From Mytilus californianus (lineage: Eukaryota), in NCBI RefSeq assembly GCF_021869535.1, contig NW_026262668.1, positions 10,416,001 to 10,480,000 of the forward strand: DNA of 64,000 nt, written 5' to 3'. Shown here in pieces: positions 4,349 through 64,000 of the stretch. The stretch's first letter is position 1. Each line of letters begins with the position of its first letter. Below the pieces are notes generated by a model. It did no database searches and had not been told where the DNA came from. It saw nothing but the letters and a program-made list of their open reading frames with translations. Position numbers and translations under genes: made by a program.

Positions 4349-7050
4349 AGACGATTACATTGATCACTTAAATAGGATCCTTTAGATAAAACCATTATCA
4401 ATAATGATATTTTAAACAGTTTGTTGTAGCTTTTATCTGTTTATCACTTGTATAACAACATGATTTCAACTAATGAAACTTCTTCTGAGAGTTGTTGAGC
4501 TATGTGAATTGACAGGAAATGACAGACAATTATGCTATCCCATAAGTATCTAATATTGTTTTCCTATTTTTGGAAACCGGTAATTACTAGAAATGACAGT
4601 TAAGAGATCAAAGTCATTAGCAAAGACGTTTGATTGATCGCATTGATGTTGTTAGTTAAAGCTTATAAAATAAATAAGATATGTTAATTACTGATACATT
4701 TTGTTCTGTTTTATCATTTTAGAATGATAATAAGGAAAAAATCAGCTTGAAGAAAATTATTCATAATACCAAATGTGATCAATAGTGTAAATAAAACTCT
4801 AAGTAAAATCCTTTATAAGCAAGATAACATATGGTTTGACAAGTACAGGTTTACTATTATGAAGTAATACATCATATCCTTTCTTGAGTCGTTTGCATAA
4901 GTTGAAATATCAAAACTGATTTTGTTTTGTTGAACTCTTGAAATAATAGATCATTTCTGTCATCAAAGTATTCATGATATTCACGTGATGAGGCGTATTA
5001 TATATATATTTATATCAGGTTTGCAAAGAAATGTTAGATATTGTGTTTTTGGAATGGTTTTTTGTATTACATTATATAAATGGCGGAGTAAGTGAATTTA
5101 CATTGTTGCGCAGTCTTATTCAATTAATCTGAAAGGAAAACGTTCTTTAGAAATATACTAAATATAGATCCAACATAAAACATTCAAAGCTTAAAGATGA
5201 GCTTGAATCACCAGCATTTTAACATTTTAGAATCAAATGAATTCTATGTACCATTTTCAAAATGGTACATGTACACCAAAAAGTTGTGATTGGCCAAAAA
5301 CGTCATAAAAATGAAAATTCCACCATTAGAATGACATGTTTTCATGTTTAGGAACAAACTATGAAAACACCCATTTCTGTAGTGTTACGTGACGTCATTG
5401 CTTCATATTTTCCAGTATCACGTCCTGTTCAAGATAAAAAAAAATATATACAGTAGGATCAAATAAACATTTTAAACTATTGAAATTATCAGTTTTATTG
5501 GAAAAATTATGGATAAAGTTCTAACCTAATGCGGAAATTGGAAAAACATGACGTCTAGCACTAAGTCATGTTTAATTTGATGTTATCTGATTATTGAATG
5601 TAAGAAAATCACTTCACTTCCTGGTTTTTGAAATTCTTTGTTTTAAAGTAATAATAAATGCAGTGGCCTAAGGGGGCGAGCGATTGGAATTTGCTATGTT
5701 TTATTTATTCAATAAAGAATAATCTATATTGAGAGTAATGTACTAATAACAAAATTAAGTCACATAATTTAATTTTGTCTGATCGGGTCTTTTTAGATTT
5801 AATGAAATACTAAAAACCTTTTTATTAGATTAACAAAATATGATATAATAGATTATAGGCAATAGGTTATTTGAAATATGCAGTATCATTTTTTTTTCCT
5901 TATCTATGGGATTGCTTTGCTCAGGTCGCTCTCCACTTGATACGTGAATATAATACATTTCAGTATAACGCTTAATTACTTTATCTTGATTATGGAAACA
6001 CAGGTGTTTTCCATTCGTTTGATGTGTTTGAGCTTTTGATTTTGCCATTTGATAAGGGACTTTCCGTTTTGAATTTTCTTTGGAGGTCGGTATTTTTGTC
6101 ATTTTACTTTTTTCCTAGCTGCGCAAATATTTTTTGCACTTCTCACCTTTACCCGCGAGCCTTCTAAGAACATTGTTTCATGACAATTTTCTATTGGTTT
6201 ATAAGGAAATGATGGTATATTATTTTTACAACATACACAATATTTTGAAACAACCTTAAGGAAATACCTATACTGGTTTCTCCATTGTTTGATACCGAAC
6301 AAATTTCAAAAGTATATCGTTATACAATTGCTGTTGAAGAGTGTAAATGCATGTATTCAAAATGAACGAAAAAAAAATAAAGTACGATAAATATGTTGCA
6401 TTTTCAGCCAAACAATATATTTTACAATATTTCTTTCGTGATTGAATGATGTTCAATTTCGACTGTATTTTAAGGTGGATTTCATTTTCCCAACATCATC
6501 GTATACTAGAACTATTTATTTATTTTCCTCAATAATAAAAACAAATCTCTTGGTATAGAAAATGTAATCAAGTACACAACAGTGAGCTTTTGAACAAAAT
6601 ATTAACAGGAATTTAACATAAAAAGTTAAACTGAATTCTATATCTTATTCCCATTTATATTTCATTTTTAAAACCAGGTAAAATTCGCGTGAATTGCAGG
6701 TTAAAGTTCAATTACCATGGAATTTTCGTTTATTTTATGAGAATTTGGCGTGAAATGGGGAATTCATGTAAGAGATAAAGGTATGTATGACCCTAAAACT
6801 GTAGTATCTGACATATGTACTGTATCAATGATAGCAACGATTTGTTATCCATATAAGCTGTTACCATTAGATTTTCATCAATCAAATGCGGTATAATTAG
6901 CCTAATATATAATCTTTGTTTTCATCAACACTATTTGTTAACAGTCTGCGAACAAGACAAATGTTTCATTGGATACTATTATTAGTTAATCAGAAGATTC
7001 ATTCTCTTATAGAAGTAATTTGAAAATAAAATGACACTTCATAAATTGCA

Positions 7051-7260
7051 TGCGTCCCGAAGCGCTTTTCTGGATTAACCTTCACCAGGAACGCTCAAAG
7101 AAAAAATATTGAAAGCCAAGGATGTATAACTACCTGAACACACGAAGAGTTTATGGACCAACAGGGACCGAAAAATAATAGAGAAATTCGTCGCAGGTCA
7201 ACTTAGCCTGAGCATCTGAGCATAACAAAAGAGTATCCTTCCTTGGTAGGTTAGGGTCTC
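7051..7260 (-). mobile_element. Retrozyme-like family B fragment with variant hammerhead-like motif; relatives at 11556-11640, 41140-41420, 48470-48740, 49455-49760
   Basis: The - strand reads gagcgttcCTGGTGAaggttaatccaGAAAagcgcttcgggacgca. The body gaaagccaaggatgtataa...aataatagccaaattc...aactttgcctga recurs in the other copies. Confidence 0.55.
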
Positions 7261-8032
7261 TGTATGTGTGAGTTATTAAGGAATGCTTGTATACAGAGCT
7301 ATTTAGTCGATAACTTGTGTTTACTATAAGGTGTTTAATTGTGAATTTATTATAATTTGTCGAATACTTTTTTTTCATAGATTTCGAAGATATAGGTGAA
7401 CCACGAATTTAAATATTCAACAGAATACATGTGTTCTATAGGTATCTATGACTAATTGGTATGACTAGTAGACATTTGCAGAAACTGTCATACACCTACG
7501 ATTATGATTACAAATACACTTACAGGTAGCATTTAAATCTTGGGTCGTTTCAAAGTGTAAATATAAACCGTCGGTTAAAAAAAAGACTAACTCCTATGGT
7601 GTTTTCTATAGTTGAATAACGGAATTTTAAAGAAATATCGGTAAAAAATGTCATCTTCTCGTTGCAGTGGCTAGATTTGGACATTTAATTGACAAACCGA
7701 TATTGATTTTTTTTTATCTCGAGTCATACAGCGGCAGGTTTAATAATTATATTTGTGTAACTTGCTTCCTCTATCTTTTCAAATAAAAAATGGCAAATTT
7801 ACAGACACACACACATCAACAAAGGTTTAGAAAAAACATACACAAATTTTATTCTATAAAAGAACCCCTCTCCTTTTTTTCGAAATTAACTTTTAGAGCA
7901 TACGATACAGTAAAGATCCCTCGGTGAATTTTCTTGAAACTGTAATATAGAGTGCACATATGACGGTGTCCATATCAACACAAAGTTAATCTGATAAGTG
8001 TATTTCGTGCATTTATTTCATTTCCCCCCGTT

Positions 8033-9033
8033 ATGGACGAAGAACACAGTTTAACGATGGCAGCAGTACCTGCCCTGATGCAGACTCCACCAGATGTTAT
8101 GTTACACATTTCATTCTTCATCTGATTCCAACCGTGGTAGTCCTAGCTTGACCACCTACAAACCAATCTTTTACAATCAGGGAAATATTATAGGCAATGC
8201 TGTACACTTTTGGAATGTCAAAGATGTGTTCACTTGTTTTGATATTCCTTCTACAGGTGAAACTCCTGAAACGTTACTTCAAATTGTATCCGATGTTAAT
8301 GGTCCCTTTAGACAGAGAACCGGTTGGGATCATTAGCTTTCCCCGGGAAACAGAATTCTTCTTTTCTGTTATGGTTTTAATCGTAACCATCTTATCATAT
8401 GATTTCTGAAATAGTTTACGTTAGTGTTTCGACTACCAAAGATGAAACACATAAATGTATACCTATTTCAAGACACATACAGCCGTCTTATGAGTTGGCA
8501 TTCTTTGGGTGATGGGAAGAACTTACAAGGTGAGTGGTCAAAACGTCCGTTTGCAGTAACGGCTACCGACGGAACTTCAACTGCTAGTTTGCGGCCTATA
8601 ACGGAACCACAGGAACAGTATTTCTCGGGTCACAGACATTGTCACAGACATTGTCACTGCATTCACACTCGTGTGGTAATATCGAACGAAGACATGATAT
8701 GTAATGTTGAGTGCGGATTTCTTTGGCATCAGCAATATATGTTGATAAGAAATATAGGACAAGTATTACTTTTTCTGACTGAGTTGTTTTTGCTAGGCGA
8801 TAAAGTATATCCGAAAAGATATCCAGTATTGACACCTTATATAAAACAAACCCCCAGTATATGCAGAGGAAATGTAGAAAATTGACATACTACACACTAT
8901 AGAGTAGAGGTTGAACACGCCATCGGAAAATTATAAAAAAAAACACAAAGTTATGAGGGCTTTGTGGCAAATCACATCTGTTGTGACCATAAGCGCGGCA
9001 TTTGTGTGTCGTCGAAAAGACTTATTTACATGA
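8033..9033 (+). pseudogene. PIF/Harbinger-ISL2EU (HARBI1-like, DDE_Tnp_4) transposase pseudogene
   Basis: Frameshifted segments: HTH-like YPSYHMISEIVYVSVSTTKDE, then ATDGT...QYFSGHRH...CIHT, LGDKVYP...LTPY and RVEVEHAIGKL, which supply the D-D-E triad. Contains a 12-nt duplication (cacagacattgt x2), frameshifts and stops. Confidence 0.8.
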
Positions 9034-58205: not shown

Positions 58206-58567
58206 GTATGGTACACTAGAACATTGTTTTCGTGACGAATTTGTATAAAGACTTTCTTTTTTTTTAATTACATACTAAGTAAATTAATTGGATTCTACGA
58301 ATTTGTTCTTTCTTCTTCGTGATGAAATCTTGTCAACTTGACCTATCTTGAAAATCAATACTTTTGACTCTAGAATATCTTATATCATTTAAAAAAAAAA
58401 TTCAATTTGCATTTCTGTAGAATACTGCATAAAGTAGTAATTTTACAATAAATCATTTTTAGCAAAATATAGAACAAAAAAGAATAAAGAGTGCCCGTTC
58501 TTTTAATTAATTAGGAAAAAAAATACAAGGAGTTACATCATCATTATTCCATATGGGCTTGTTTCAG

Positions 58568-58765
58568 GCATATAAAGAAAAATTATATGGTAAAAAATAT
58601 GTTTGGATTATAATTGGTTGGTACCCAGACAACTGGTACAAGAAGAAGGATCCTAAATGGCCCGTTAATTGCACTGCTGACCAAATTAAAGAGGCACTCG
58701 AGGGGCATATAACAACCGAGGCTGTCGTTTTACATCAAGAGAACACTGTAACACAATCTGGAATG
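58568..58765 (+). CDS. GABBR1: GABA-B receptor subunit 1, coding exon (198 nt; AYKEKLYGKKYVWIIIGWYPDNWYKKKDPKWPVNCTADQIKEALEGHITTEAVVLHQENTVTQSGM)
   Basis: tttcag acceptor and gtaag donor at 58766. Matches [23 protein letters not shown]...NCTVDEMTEAVEGHITTE. Confidence 0.96.
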
Positions 58766-60409
58766 GTAAGTGTAATTACATTTCTCATATTAAACTTACA
58801 ACTCTCCCGAAGGTGCGTTTGATACGGTCTGGTGCCCTGTCAAGTATTTTTGGTTTTTCCTTTTTTCCTTTTTATGTTTTATTACAAATAATTCTCTTGA
58901 CTACTATAACGACATAACTATACAAGACAGCCACAATTACGCAATAGTACAAATTTAACATCTTAACTGACATGAATCAGTCTTGATGGATGTTTCAAAA
59001 CAGGCCGACATAACCTAAGGAAGTTCTATTGGGACACATCACTATAAAAAAAAATGATGTCTGATTAGGAAAACGCGATTAATCATTGTGGAAAGTTAGT
59101 AGATTACAGATTACGTCAATACCACTCTAGATAGATATGAACTAAGAACTGAGTGCACATGGAAGAAAAGTGATGAAGGAAAGGCATATATAATGTGCTT
59201 TGCTTTTTGATTAAGTCCCTGTTTTTCATTACATGGAATTTTAATTTTGATATAAAGTCATGCAATCTGATTTAAATTGATGTATCCATAGGCATTTTTT
59301 TTTTATCAAACTACAAATTTGCACAAAACTAAAACTAAACACTGCTAGAAATGAAAAATAGACGTATTGCCGAGTTTAGATCGAGATACATCAAACAGTT
59401 TAATCCTCCTAGATTTCTTTCATTGTTCTGCTTTTATTCATAAGTCTAGAAGAAGGACTACCTGAGCAAAAAGAACTAAATATTTCACTAAAACAACTTT
59501 TAAAATTGTTAAGAGGGAATTCTTTGTTGAAGTTTTCAAATGTGATAAAATCACTTTTATTTCTGCTAAAACGCAAATGTAAGGATCCATAAAAAACTTT
59601 TATTTAATCCTGTCAACTGTCAACTTTATATTTCTAGCTTTGATATTTTTCTCTACATACATTTACAATATTTTCAAAGTTGTCGTTAGTAGTATGAATA
59701 TCGTTACCAATTTTAAATGACGATACCTATAAAACATGCAAAATGGATGAACATAAGCGTATTGGTGCATGTGATTTTTTTTTGGCCAAAGCAAATTTTT
59801 ATACTGAGAACTAATTCTAATGTCTTATGATAAATTTGATATATATTCTGATATGTTCAGACTTACTATTATTGATTTTGTGCCTTATTCATAGGTACCA
59901 CGCTAACAACAAAAATCACAAACAACTAATTGTATTGTACGTGATTCAGGTTTTGATAAAGGTGAAAACCGATATTTTCAATGGTATATGTTAACATATT
60001 ATTCCAATCGATTAAATAGTGATGATGACCGTAAAGCCTTAGAATAATGATATCCATCATTCAATAAATTTTGCCAAAAAAATACGAAATGAGTATACTG
60101 CAGAAATTCTATCGATTATTGGTGTATTTGCATAGCATTACCATAGAAAAGTCATTTCTTAGGAGGCAAGTACGTTACTACAGAAGAATTGAAATTGTAA
60201 AACTGAAACCATTATCTTTTTTTTATAAAGCTGTTAATTTATGTTGATTTTCGGTAATTTTAAAAATTTGAGGCAGACCTCTTTTTCTTTTTTTCTAATT
60301 ATTTTCAATTAACTATTTTATCCTTTGGTTACCTCCTGTTGACACATAAGAAGTAAGTACCTACCGTAGTCTTGATATAATATCAGTTTTCTCCTTTTTA
60401 ATCTTCTAT

Positions 60410-60860: not shown

Positions 60861-62743
60861 TATTTCAAAGTTCGTAAGTACAGGACTCCTTTTTCATTTG
60901 ACATCATTAACCTTCGAAATTATTCTTTGAAGGCATGGCCAGTTAGATTAAGCTACAGATATCACCTTTTTTACTCATTTCTATTCGGTCGAATTAGAAG
61001 AATTTTCCCTAAAGAAGCTTTTTCCATGTTTTCCATGTTTAAACAAATCAACAGATTATAATTAATCGATAGTTAATAAAAAAAAATGCTTTCCTGTGTG
61101 GGAGGTTATAATTGTCAAGACGGCTTTTTTTTAACCCTAGCTGTCGATCGTACGATAATCTTTCGATGTTCACCTTTTATTCAGTGTCTATTGTAGGTAA
61201 ATATGTTATTAATACTATCGCAATACACCTCATTATATTTATAATGGGATCGGCTTATAAGTTCTTACAGCTTAAATATTTCAAATTGAAAAATAAATCT
61301 TCAATTACCAAATAACTCTTTGCCATCATATAATTGTAAGAATTAAAATATAATAAATTTCTTGCATCTTTTAGTAATCGTAATCATACTATATATCCAC
61401 GTGATAAGTTCGTCTTCAAGATACAATTAGTTACTATTAACGGAATTGCAATTTGAAAGCCGAAGCTACCTTCTACTTCGAAATAGTGGTTTATTTTGTT
61501 GCTTCAAAATCAGTTGAAGTGATACCAATCGATTCAAGGTTGTGATGAAATCGTCAACAAGTTTGACATTCTTAATGGTTAAGAACCATTGATCATTGTA
61601 ATACCACTTTTCGTTTTATAAAATATCAATTCAGATTTTATGAAGATTTATAATGGCCATACGTTTGGTAGTGCATTTTAAAACGAATCATTGATGTCTA
61701 ACCACGATTCTGTAAAACTCTTTTAATACCATATTTTTCTGACAGATCAGATTAAGATCTGGATCAATATAAGTGTTTTCCTCAGATGTAATAAAACTTA
61801 GGCATGCCACAAGCTTCATTAGGTCTATGGACAATTTCCGATCAGCTGTAAGGTTATCCAATAAGGCCATCTTATCGTATGTAATAAGCCTATTTCTAAT
61901 ACTGTAACAGTAAAATCTTCAACTCCTTAAACTTTTAAACAAGTAAAGGGATGAAATTGGTTAATGGTGTATATTTAAGTACGCATTTTGTGACCTTTTC
62001 AGTAAATGGTCTTTTTAGGACTACCATTTCACTTAACTTAGGGTAAAATTTCTTTTCGAATGATTGTCGGTAACTAAAAATATATCTATGTGAACTATAG
62101 TATTCACAGATAAGGAAGACGACGACAGATTTTAAAACACATTTTGTATGTTGTAGTTATATTTAAAAAAAAAAACATTTTGAACTTTTCTTGTCGTTCT
62201 TTGTAAACATTTCTCTTTGTGACTAATTTATTAATTTTAAAACAGACTAAGATATTGAAAACGACAGAAACATATAGTTATCTGACAGGTAAAATGATGT
62301 ATTGGTTTCCTGATTTTCTATATTTTCTCTTACAATGGATAAAACTCTTAACATGTCTAAGCAACGCAAACAATCAGTGACGGCATTTATTTTCAATGAC
62401 AAGTAATTATAAACAAGTTTAATCTCAAAAACGATATGAAGTGCTTTGCAGAATCGAAATTTTACACCAGCTTTTGTTTTATACACAACACATTTTAAAG
62501 AAAACTTTTATTTATAACATACTAATTGTAAACGTCATTATCCAAATTAGATACCATTACATAACAATATACATTTCTATAACTTAAAATGTTACATCAT
62601 TGGCTTTCTGGAGACTACTCTTTCATTGAAAAGTTTAACCTTTAAATTTTTAAACCTAATAAAATACATGTAAATTGAAAATGCCTAATGGTAAAATTAT
62701 GTGTATATTTGTACAAAAAAGTTTAACTTAAATACATTTCAAT

Positions 62744-63040
62744 GCTGGGGAGATTCCTGCAGCAAACTTAACTGTGTGAAATGTCACCTGGGGAGATCCC
62801 GGCAGGTGTGAGCTACTTGACTAGAGAAATTACCGACCTGGGGAGATCCGGGCAGGCTTATTCCTTGGGAGATCCCGGCAGGAATTAACTTAATACCTTA
62901 ACATACATATATGTTCCTGGGGAGATCCCGGCAGGAATTAACTTAATAATTTAAAATACCTAATTGTTCCTGGGGAGATCTCGGCAGGAATTACCTTAAA
63001 TATTAAAACACATGAATGTTCCTGGGGAGATCCCGGCAGG
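62744..63040. repeat. Array of seven 20-bp imperfect palindromes CCTGGGGAGATCCCGGCAGG
   Basis: Copies start at 62744, 62787, 62837, 62863, 62916, 62969 and 63021; spacers are 23, 30, 6, 33, 33 and 32 nt. Confidence 0.95.
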
Positions 63041-63215
63041 AATTAACCTATCTGATGTATTATTGAATTTGGGGAGTATAATTCCCCTCGAATTATAAAG
63101 GCCAAATTGAATGAATTCATAGTAATGAATGAGTGAAAGCCCCCAAGAAATAATGCCATATAAAAATATAAATTGGTTATATGAAAACTATAACAAAGAC
63201 TCAAAGATGCATTTA

Positions 63216-63990
63216 TCAATGATATTTACAAATAACCTTCTTATCAGTCCTGATGTATCTTATACACAACATTCTGAGGACCGTGTCTAAAGAATGACTA
63301 CGAAACTGCTTATGTTATAATCAAGGCGTATCTAAAGTTGTCCAAATAATTAATAAAAGCCTTGCATCAGTCACTTCAAAGAATGGAAGGTTATACAGCT
63401 CCCATTCTAAAAGGTACTTTTAGTACTTATTCATTGTCACCACTGGTTCAAAGCTGTTCTCTTTAATTGTTATATTCACTACTTTTCTAAAAGGATCAGT
63501 CTTTGGTGTTCTTAGTTTCACACAAAAAGTAAAGGCACTACACTGGTATCAACATCACTGATTATTAAGCAATTTAAATTGCATCCCTAATTCAACAAGT
63601 GAATTTTTTCGCATCGAAGGAAACCAAAGAAAGCTGTTAAAATGCACAATATAACATTGTCTATGAAAAGTGAGGAAAACTCCTGTTGATAACATGTTGC
63701 ACAAAGGCTGTAATATGTCTGATGTAAATGTCGGCCTGTTCATAGAAGCATACATGTAAGTTGCTATATCTTTATCCACGCAATATAAGGTAATCGCTCG
63801 GTCCATGTTGTGGGGTAGTTATGACAAGCAAAAAATGATATCAAATCCTCGCTATATACAATTATATTATCATGTTGCAATTCTTTTCGGTTCTTTCAGT
63901 GTGTTATAAAGTAATATATCAAATGGTTCTCTGTAATAGTAGGAAGACAGTTCATGGAACTCTGTATGACACTTATATTCAGAAATGATA
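63216..63990 (-). pseudogene. Tyrosine recombinase of a DIRS/Ngaro-type element, decayed; the element probably continues beyond the window
   Basis: Motifs across frameshifts: TAFFGFLRC (63611-63634), KTDPFRK (63481-63504), FINYL, SHSF/R (63286-63300) and SSEC..RYIRT (about 63249-63280). Confidence 0.8.
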
Positions 63991-64000
63991 AAAAAAAACT

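Follow-up and report, generated by a model that had tools for sequence, protein, structure and literature searches.

The window, a stretch of 64,000 nucleotides of the 1.65-Gb Mytilus californianus genome (GCF_021869535.1, contig NW_026262668.1, positions 10,416,001 to 10,480,000), contains near its right end seven copies of a 20-base GC-rich unit embedded in DNA of about 32% G+C. Six of the units match the 20-mer with at most one mismatch, whereas shuffles of the window give no such match; the remaining unit, at 62744-62763, differs at four positions and carries a swapped outer pair. Tandem Repeats Finder reports a 53-base period for the last 3.5 copies. When folded as DNA, six of the seven units adopt a structure composed of a 4-6 bp outer stem, a 2-base bulge, a 3-bp inner stem and a 4-base loop, with energies of -4 to -6 kcal/mol, while copy 3 loses the fold. 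The array lies 175 bases from the stop of a tyrosine-recombinase (YR) frame, which is a remnant ridden with stops and frameshifts on the minus strand. The observation made in the initial annotation, a seven-unit array of bulged hairpins beside a YR, is therefore confirmed, including its details: the swapped outer pair of copy 1, the G.T wobbles of copies 1 and 6, the single mismatches of copies 3 and 4, and the stem-extending flanks T/A, CA/TG and TT/AA. One correction is needed. Since the array lies downstream of the YR on the minus strand, the sense-strand unit is the reverse complement of the one first written down, and its bulge is on the 5' side.

A non-autonomous element carrying the array

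To determine what the units belong to, the genome was searched for the 20-mer. The unit occurs 188 times with at most one mismatch, always in clusters, against zero occurrences for the reversed-pattern control. Seven of the eight unit clusters outside the window that were retrieved by the unit search itself have other parts of the same repeat family beside the units, and this figure becomes 27 of 28 when clusters found through the YR fragment are added. Comparison of copies sets the limits of the element at positions 2475 and 7202 of L031 (the locus that contains the window copy; L031 2475 is window 62475), that is, up to about 67202 in window numbering, past the window's end. On the sense (minus) strand, the element comprises a 5' terminal motif, a remnant of the gag start, a second lead-in with about 26 units, the 3' 950 bases of the YR frame, the domain with the seven units, and the 3' end. 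No gene is intact, yet dozens of copies and sub-families share this layout at 78-90% identity, and the element is therefore a dead, internally deleted, non-autonomous derivative that was multiplied as a unit. One sister copy (L032 5900-7800) carries an unrelated insertion of about 390-base tandem repeats between its small array and its YR fragment. From a reading of its translation only, an open stretch elsewhere in the window looks like an exon of a host receptor gene, in which case the element would lie in or near a host gene.

Table 1. Features of the element and its surroundings (window coordinates unless L031 is indicated; relatives are described in the text)
Position	Strand	Feature	Basis
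58511-58822	+	Open stretch of about 100 codons resembling an exon of a receptor gene with a periplasmic-binding-type ligand domain	Reading of the translation
62477-62492	-	3' end of the element (end of the B region), with a 13-base terminal motif that is the inverted copy of a motif near the 5' end	Homology with other copies stops at L031 2475-2487; motif found at both ends and in head-to-tail junctions; same B end in intact relatives
62507-62512	-	AATAAA poly(A) signal (function inferred) on the sense strand, about 27 bases before the element end	Read from the sequence; signal in the same position, 30-45 bases before the B end, in the oyster, limpet and L077 relatives
62594-62630	-	IR-R, 3' arm of the long-range closing stem	Pairs with 63124-63160 in the minimum-free-energy and centroid folds; duplex energy -27.5 kcal/mol; motif recurs in the 3' regions read in relatives, an automatic scan picking it up in 4 of 8
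62744-63040	-	Array of seven bulged hairpin units: 62744-62763, 62787-62806, 62837-62856, 62863-62882, 62916-62935, 62969-62988, 63021-63040	Pattern matching, repeat finding, folding
62791-62800		Inner 10 bases of a unit, fitting the Rel/NF-kB consensus GGGRNWYYCC (same position in the other units)	Read from the sequence
63071-63087	-	Lead hairpin (hp0): G4-5/C4-5 stem, AT-rich loop, followed by a conserved lead-in to the array	Read from the sequence; same place in L063, L065, L069, L070, L072, L074 and L075
63124-63160	-	IR-L, 5' arm of the closing stem, just after the YR stop and just outside B in intact relatives	Folding; motif conserved in mussels, oyster, freshwater mussel, limpet and the further assemblies
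63216-64000	-	Decayed 3' part of the YR frame (stop at 63216-63218; box I Arg region, His-x-x-Arg and C-terminal region recognisable), continuing to about 64150	Three-frame translation; 69-70% DNA identity to the nearly intact copies on contig C99, whose product matches Pfam Phage_integrase
L031 4334-6138	-	Second, enlarged array of about 26 units	Comparison of copies
L031 6150-6221	-	Second copy of the lead hairpin, heading the large array	Self-comparison of the element
L031 7170-7182		13-base motif near the 5' end	Comparison of element ends

Coding relatives and their 3' non-coding domain

Two nearly intact copies on contig C99 of the same genome (L063 and L065) carry gag-like, RT/RNase H and YR frames, in that order, followed by the same 3' domain. 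Using the YR protein as a query, I retrieved relatives from M. coruscus (L069, 92% identity), M. galloprovincialis (L072, 65%), Ostrea edulis (L074, 54%), Sinanodonta woodiana (L075, 57%), Patella caerulea (L080, 58% over a partial protein) and further assemblies (L077 and L081-L084, 47-54%). ORF1, RT (Pfam RVT_1) and YR (Phage_integrase, SAM-like N-domain) occur in this order and orientation in L063/L065, in the relative L070, and in L077, L082 and L083. Young copies display the split direct repeats A1-[ORFs]-B1-A2-B2 that are typical of Ngaro elements, the repeats being 99-100% identical: in L077, A 174-458 equals 5900-6184 and B 5107-5889 equals 6514-7296; in L074, B 5230-6060 equals 6380-7210; in L072, B 7194-7904 equals 8243-8957. 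The B repeat is also seen in L080, L082 and L084. By contrast, the window copy, L065 and L069 end after a single B, a pattern that would fit loss of A2-B2 by recombination between the two B copies. A 163-base duplication in L063 could have been taken for B1/B2, but comparison with L065 and L069 showed it to be a local duplication in a truncated copy. The RT ORF ends 8 bases or fewer before the YR ORF, or overlaps it, a spacing that would leave no room for the methyltransferase-like domain separating DIRS1 and PAT from Ngaro, and only RVT_1 was found in it by Pfam, in a search that included no profile of the DIRS methyltransferase domain. Long inverted repeats of the DIRS1 type, with an internal region complementary to both termini, were sought by self-comparison of the element, which gave no inverted match beyond the 13-base motif at the two ends.

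In ten of the eleven sampled lineages (47-93% YR identity), the stretch after the YR stop follows the same plan: the conserved left arm of a roughly 35-base inverted repeat, a lead hairpin with a G/C stem and an AT-rich loop, 4-10 short GC-rich hairpins separated by AT-rich spacers, the right arm, and a tail with AATAAA 30-45 bases before the end of B. B starts just after the left arm, so that the array lies inside B and is present twice in a full-length copy. Folding recovers the closing stem in three of four cases, with z-scores of -3.9 for the window copy, -6.5 for L072 and -11.5 for L077, but not in L080 (z-score -2.6). A simple count of hairpins against shuffles is weak in GC-rich regions (8 in the oyster against a shuffle mean of 4.1) and was not used as evidence. 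Rfam gave no match to the domain. Only L081 (47% YR identity) shows neither the closing-stem motifs nor a hairpin array after the YR (4960-6300), and it may mark the limit of the clade that has the domain. In L072, a run of about 40 A's with two C's inside it (6995-7031) sits between the YR stop and the closing stem.

Pairing, crossover and transcription

The initial annotation noted that the variation mostly preserves pairing, inferred that the units may be structure-selected, and set covariation in a many-copy alignment as a test. Within this genome, the outcome would have been equivocal. Among 383 decayed units, only 2 of 7 pairs covary, and these trace to old unit types shared with M. coruscus, while the rest is one-sided decay dominated by a CpG transition in the bulge. 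Comparison between lineages and between neighbouring units is far clearer. Outer stems read CCTG/CAGG, TCCG/CGGA and GCTG/CAGC in Mytilus, CTGC/GCAG in the second mussel lineage, CCCG/CGGG alternating with CTCC/GGAG in the oyster, and ATGG/CCAT in the limpet, with three further types in Sinanodonta; the loop-closing pair of the inner stem takes all four Watson-Crick forms (GGG/CCC, GGT/ACC, GGA/TCC and GGC/GCC). Over ten unit types parsed by script, 68 of 70 cells are Watson-Crick pairs and 2 are G-U pairs, whereas permuting the 3' halves among types gives a mean of 45.9, and none of 20000 permutations reaches the observed value. L077 and L084 show compensated changes between units of one array. 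The structural parse of each unit type was, however, chosen by me. A covariance model built from Mytilus units was too sequence-specific to serve instead: even with filters off, it did not reach the M. galloprovincialis, Sinanodonta or limpet units, or the second oyster unit type. MAFFT alone put units with different bulge and loop lengths out of register and was not used for pair counts. On a model-fitted alignment restricted to Mytilus and one oyster type, which leans towards the structure, 94.7% of cells pair and 4 of 9 pairs change on both sides; 0-1 of 500 shuffles reach these values, and slid controls are far lower. All these comparisons use natural copies.

While the stems change, other parts of the unit are kept. 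Three bases of the loop are the best-conserved part within the genome (2-4% change), and part of the loop (ATC) and a pyrimidine bulge on the 5' side of the sense strand recur in most lineages. The limpet differs in both, its bulge being an A, and the limpet and L082 units differ in geometry or loop. A 1-2-base bulge on this side is present in nine of the ten unit types (Mytilus, oyster, Sinanodonta and limpet), the exception being the L065 variant, which has lost the bulge and forms a perfect stem.

These data bear on two explanations that I consider very unlikely. The first is a neutral minisatellite of a quasi-palindromic unit, whose palindromy would be inherited by descent or kept by hairpin-templated mutation. 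Copy number is indeed variable (4-10, and up to about 26), decay within the genome is mostly uncompensated, and derivatives form satellite-like arrays. In particular, a sub-family whose unit has one different loop base forms head-to-tail repeats of about 960 bases (units, tail, B-end/A-start junction, start of A) and kilobase-long unit arrays (L045 1-1450, L046, L047 and L048, on contigs C1, C110 and C13; L036 7380-7480). This looks like a satellite seeded by the 3' domain, and the open frames of 440-480 codons that it shows in all three frames are an artefact of the repeat. However, the same architecture holds the same place in bivalve and gastropod lineages despite near-complete turnover of stem letters, which strongly disfavours a neutral origin. 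The second is an enhancer-like array of duplex sites for a host transcription factor in a U3-like region, suggested by the Rel/NF-kB-like inner 10-mer and by the position of B upstream of A at the internal B-A junction. The kB-like match is lost in sister lineages (inner stems GGT/ACC, GGA/TCC, GGC/GCC) while pairing is kept, and is probably coincidental; moreover, the outer stems of neighbouring units differ completely yet remain self-complementary, which a duplex site does not require.

I then asked whether the units are themselves recombination sites, one of the possibilities raised in the initial annotation. Single copies end a few bases past the 13-base motif. Internal B1-A2 junctions of intact elements, and head-to-tail junctions in L036 and L045, show the two motifs facing each other as a palindrome, with inverted arms of roughly 11-13 bases around a 22-30-base AT-rich spacer (L074 6040-6100, L036 7406-7461, L080 5235-5300, L084 5480-5530). 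Much of the spacer is shared between oyster and mussel elements despite about 54% YR identity. The junction is a likely core recombination site of the clade. The copy ends, where crossover must have taken place, are at the B-end/A-start palindrome and not in the array; this junction, about 270 bases from the nearest unit, is where the element is opened. In addition, neighbouring units in one element have unrelated stem sequences, which argues against duplex recognition of the whole unit.

The main idea of the initial annotation, folded single-stranded DNA sites for the YR, leads to a rival explanation in which the hairpins would form in the single-stranded cDNA and act as accessory or assembly sites that bring YR molecules to the nearby junction, loosely like integron attC sites or lambda arm-type sites. 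DIRS-1 makes single-stranded cDNA intermediates (PMC7192593), the array is close to the junction, the hairpins combine extrahelical bases and variable stems with a conserved fold as attC sites do, and complementarity is equally compatible with DNA. Nevertheless, as DNA the units are only marginally stable, and their number varies from 4 to about 30 without a fixed spacing to the junction. This possibility, inferred from sequence alone, is unlikely on present evidence. It remains doubtful, though not excluded, that YR recognizes the folded cDNA to assemble next to the palindrome and close or integrate the circle; were this so, it would be a eukaryotic retroelement counterpart of folded-site recognition by integron integrases.

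The alternative raised in the initial annotation, RNA hairpins, fits better. In a stranded RNA library of the same species label, the reads placed on the element are almost all (about 99% of depth) first-mate-on-plus, which by the usual library convention implies RNA from the minus, that is sense, strand. The reads are densest over L031 2471-3325, covering the tail, array, lead hairpin and left arm. They come from sister copies rather than from this copy, as there are fixed differences and joints that add or remove units. RNA-library contigs of another study also contain the region. The array thus exists as RNA, most probably sense RNA, which does not by itself show function. Complementarity cannot tell sense RNA from either cDNA strand, and G-U versus A-C counts give no significant strand asymmetry.

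A candidate cis-acting signal and its closest parallels

Taken together, the interpretation of the initial annotation is partly supported. The element does belong to the YR retrotransposon (DIRS-order) group, the array does lie in the B split direct repeat of intact relatives, unit number does vary between copies and the stems are selected for pairing, whereas the idea that the units are the recombination sites is not supported. What the analysis establishes is the place and plan of the domain after the YR stop, the covariation of its stems with recurrence of part of the loop and of the bulge in most lineages, its retention and even enlargement in non-coding derivatives that have lost all genes, the transcription of family members from one strand only, most probably the sense strand, and the location of copy ends at the palindrome. 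It is very probable that the array is a selected cis-acting structured element of a clade of Ngaro-like retrotransposons found so far in molluscs. Its mode of action, including folding in single-stranded nucleic acid and binding of any protein, be it ORF1, RT or YR, is an inference. Free stems with a kept loop and bulge, a position in the 3' untranslated part of the RNA just upstream of the inferred poly(A) site, a closed domain, and persistence in gene-less derivatives fit a signal read in single-stranded form, most likely in the genomic RNA or possibly in the cDNA. The preferred, still tentative hypothesis is that the hairpins serve as a multivalent platform that would recruit an element-encoded protein (ORF1/Gag-like or RT) to the element's own RNA for packaging or for starting cDNA synthesis; a non-autonomous copy with more hairpins would then compete better for those proteins. 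The explanation as a whole has about an even chance of being right. The ORF1 proteins of four lineages (L077 817-2382, L074 1160-2515, L075 891-2114, L084 1-824) each give a weak, sub-threshold Pfam HeH/LEM match near the N-terminus, which is only a hint of nucleic-acid binding. An unlikely possibility is an RNA or cDNA structure acting without a dedicated protein partner, by pausing reverse transcriptase and promoting the template switch between B copies, as hairpins in the retroviral R region do, or by protecting the RNA 3' end from exonucleases. The array does lie inside the repeat that any circle-forming or strand-transfer model must use, about 270-300 bases upstream of the inferred poly(A) site, in a domain closed by a long-range stem, but the recurrence of part of the loop and of a pyrimidine 5' bulge while stems are free to change points to sequence-specific recognition rather than bulk structure.

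How YR retrotransposons (DIRS, Ngaro, PAT) copy themselves is still largely a paper model: the primer for cDNA synthesis is unknown for DIRS-1 (PMC7192593), and the Ngaro papers I read describe neither a primer nor an RNA-selection signal. A non-coding domain conserved in fold from bivalves to a gastropod, which non-autonomous parasites keep and multiply, is a concrete candidate for a cis signal, and divides the question into which of the three element proteins binds the hairpin, in which form (RNA, plus or minus DNA, duplex), and whether the loop and bulge are the determinants. The closing-stem motifs also provide a practical signature for annotating this clade and its gene-less derivatives in mollusc genomes.

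The element itself shares with Ngaro retrotransposons (PMC9210276, PMC8547959, PMC4157794), already reported in molluscs (PMC4157794, PMC10294476), the gag-like, RT/RH and YR genes in one orientation and, in intact relatives, the split direct repeats. What appears new is the conserved closing stem and hairpin array inside B: literature searches on hairpins or tandem repeats in Ngaro or DIRS elements of molluscs found no description, PMC8547959 and PMC9210276 mention neither hairpins, stem-loops nor tandem repeats, and the other Ngaro and DIRS papers that I could read do not mention such a domain, although absence from the papers searched is not proof of absence from the literature. The window copy differs from a canonical Ngaro element as a rearranged derivative with one A start, one B end and an extra, enlarged internal array. 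DIRS-1 also has non-coding terminal structures that are essential cis elements, single-stranded cDNA, and a hairpin at the RNA 3' end suggested to prime cDNA synthesis (PMC7192593); however, it has long inverted repeats and a region complementary to both termini, whereas here there is only a 13-base inverted motif at the ends and an array of many hairpins about 270 bases inside. Hypervariable tandem repeats in the 3' untranslated region of plant LTR retrotransposons likewise lie between the last gene and the terminal repeat, vary in copy number and expand into satellite-like arrays (compare L045-L047), but are not reported as conserved hairpins with covarying stems across classes of animals. 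Integron attC sites resemble the array as imperfect palindromes near a tyrosine recombinase, conserved in fold rather than in sequence, with extrahelical bases. An attC is, however, itself the crossover site, occurs once per cassette, is 57-141 bases long and is recognised as folded bottom-strand DNA, whereas here crossover maps elsewhere, the units are 18-40 bases in tandem and the host is an animal retroelement. In the view proposed here, the array would work most like the protein-binding stem-loops of other retroelement RNAs, such as retroviral packaging signals and the 3' stem-loops that stringent LINEs share with their SINE partners, which are short stem-loops in an untranslated region, with free stems and partly conserved loops, retained by non-autonomous parasites of the coding element. 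Those are single or few distinct hairpins, whereas here one hairpin type is repeated 4-10 times, and up to about 26 times, inside a closed domain.
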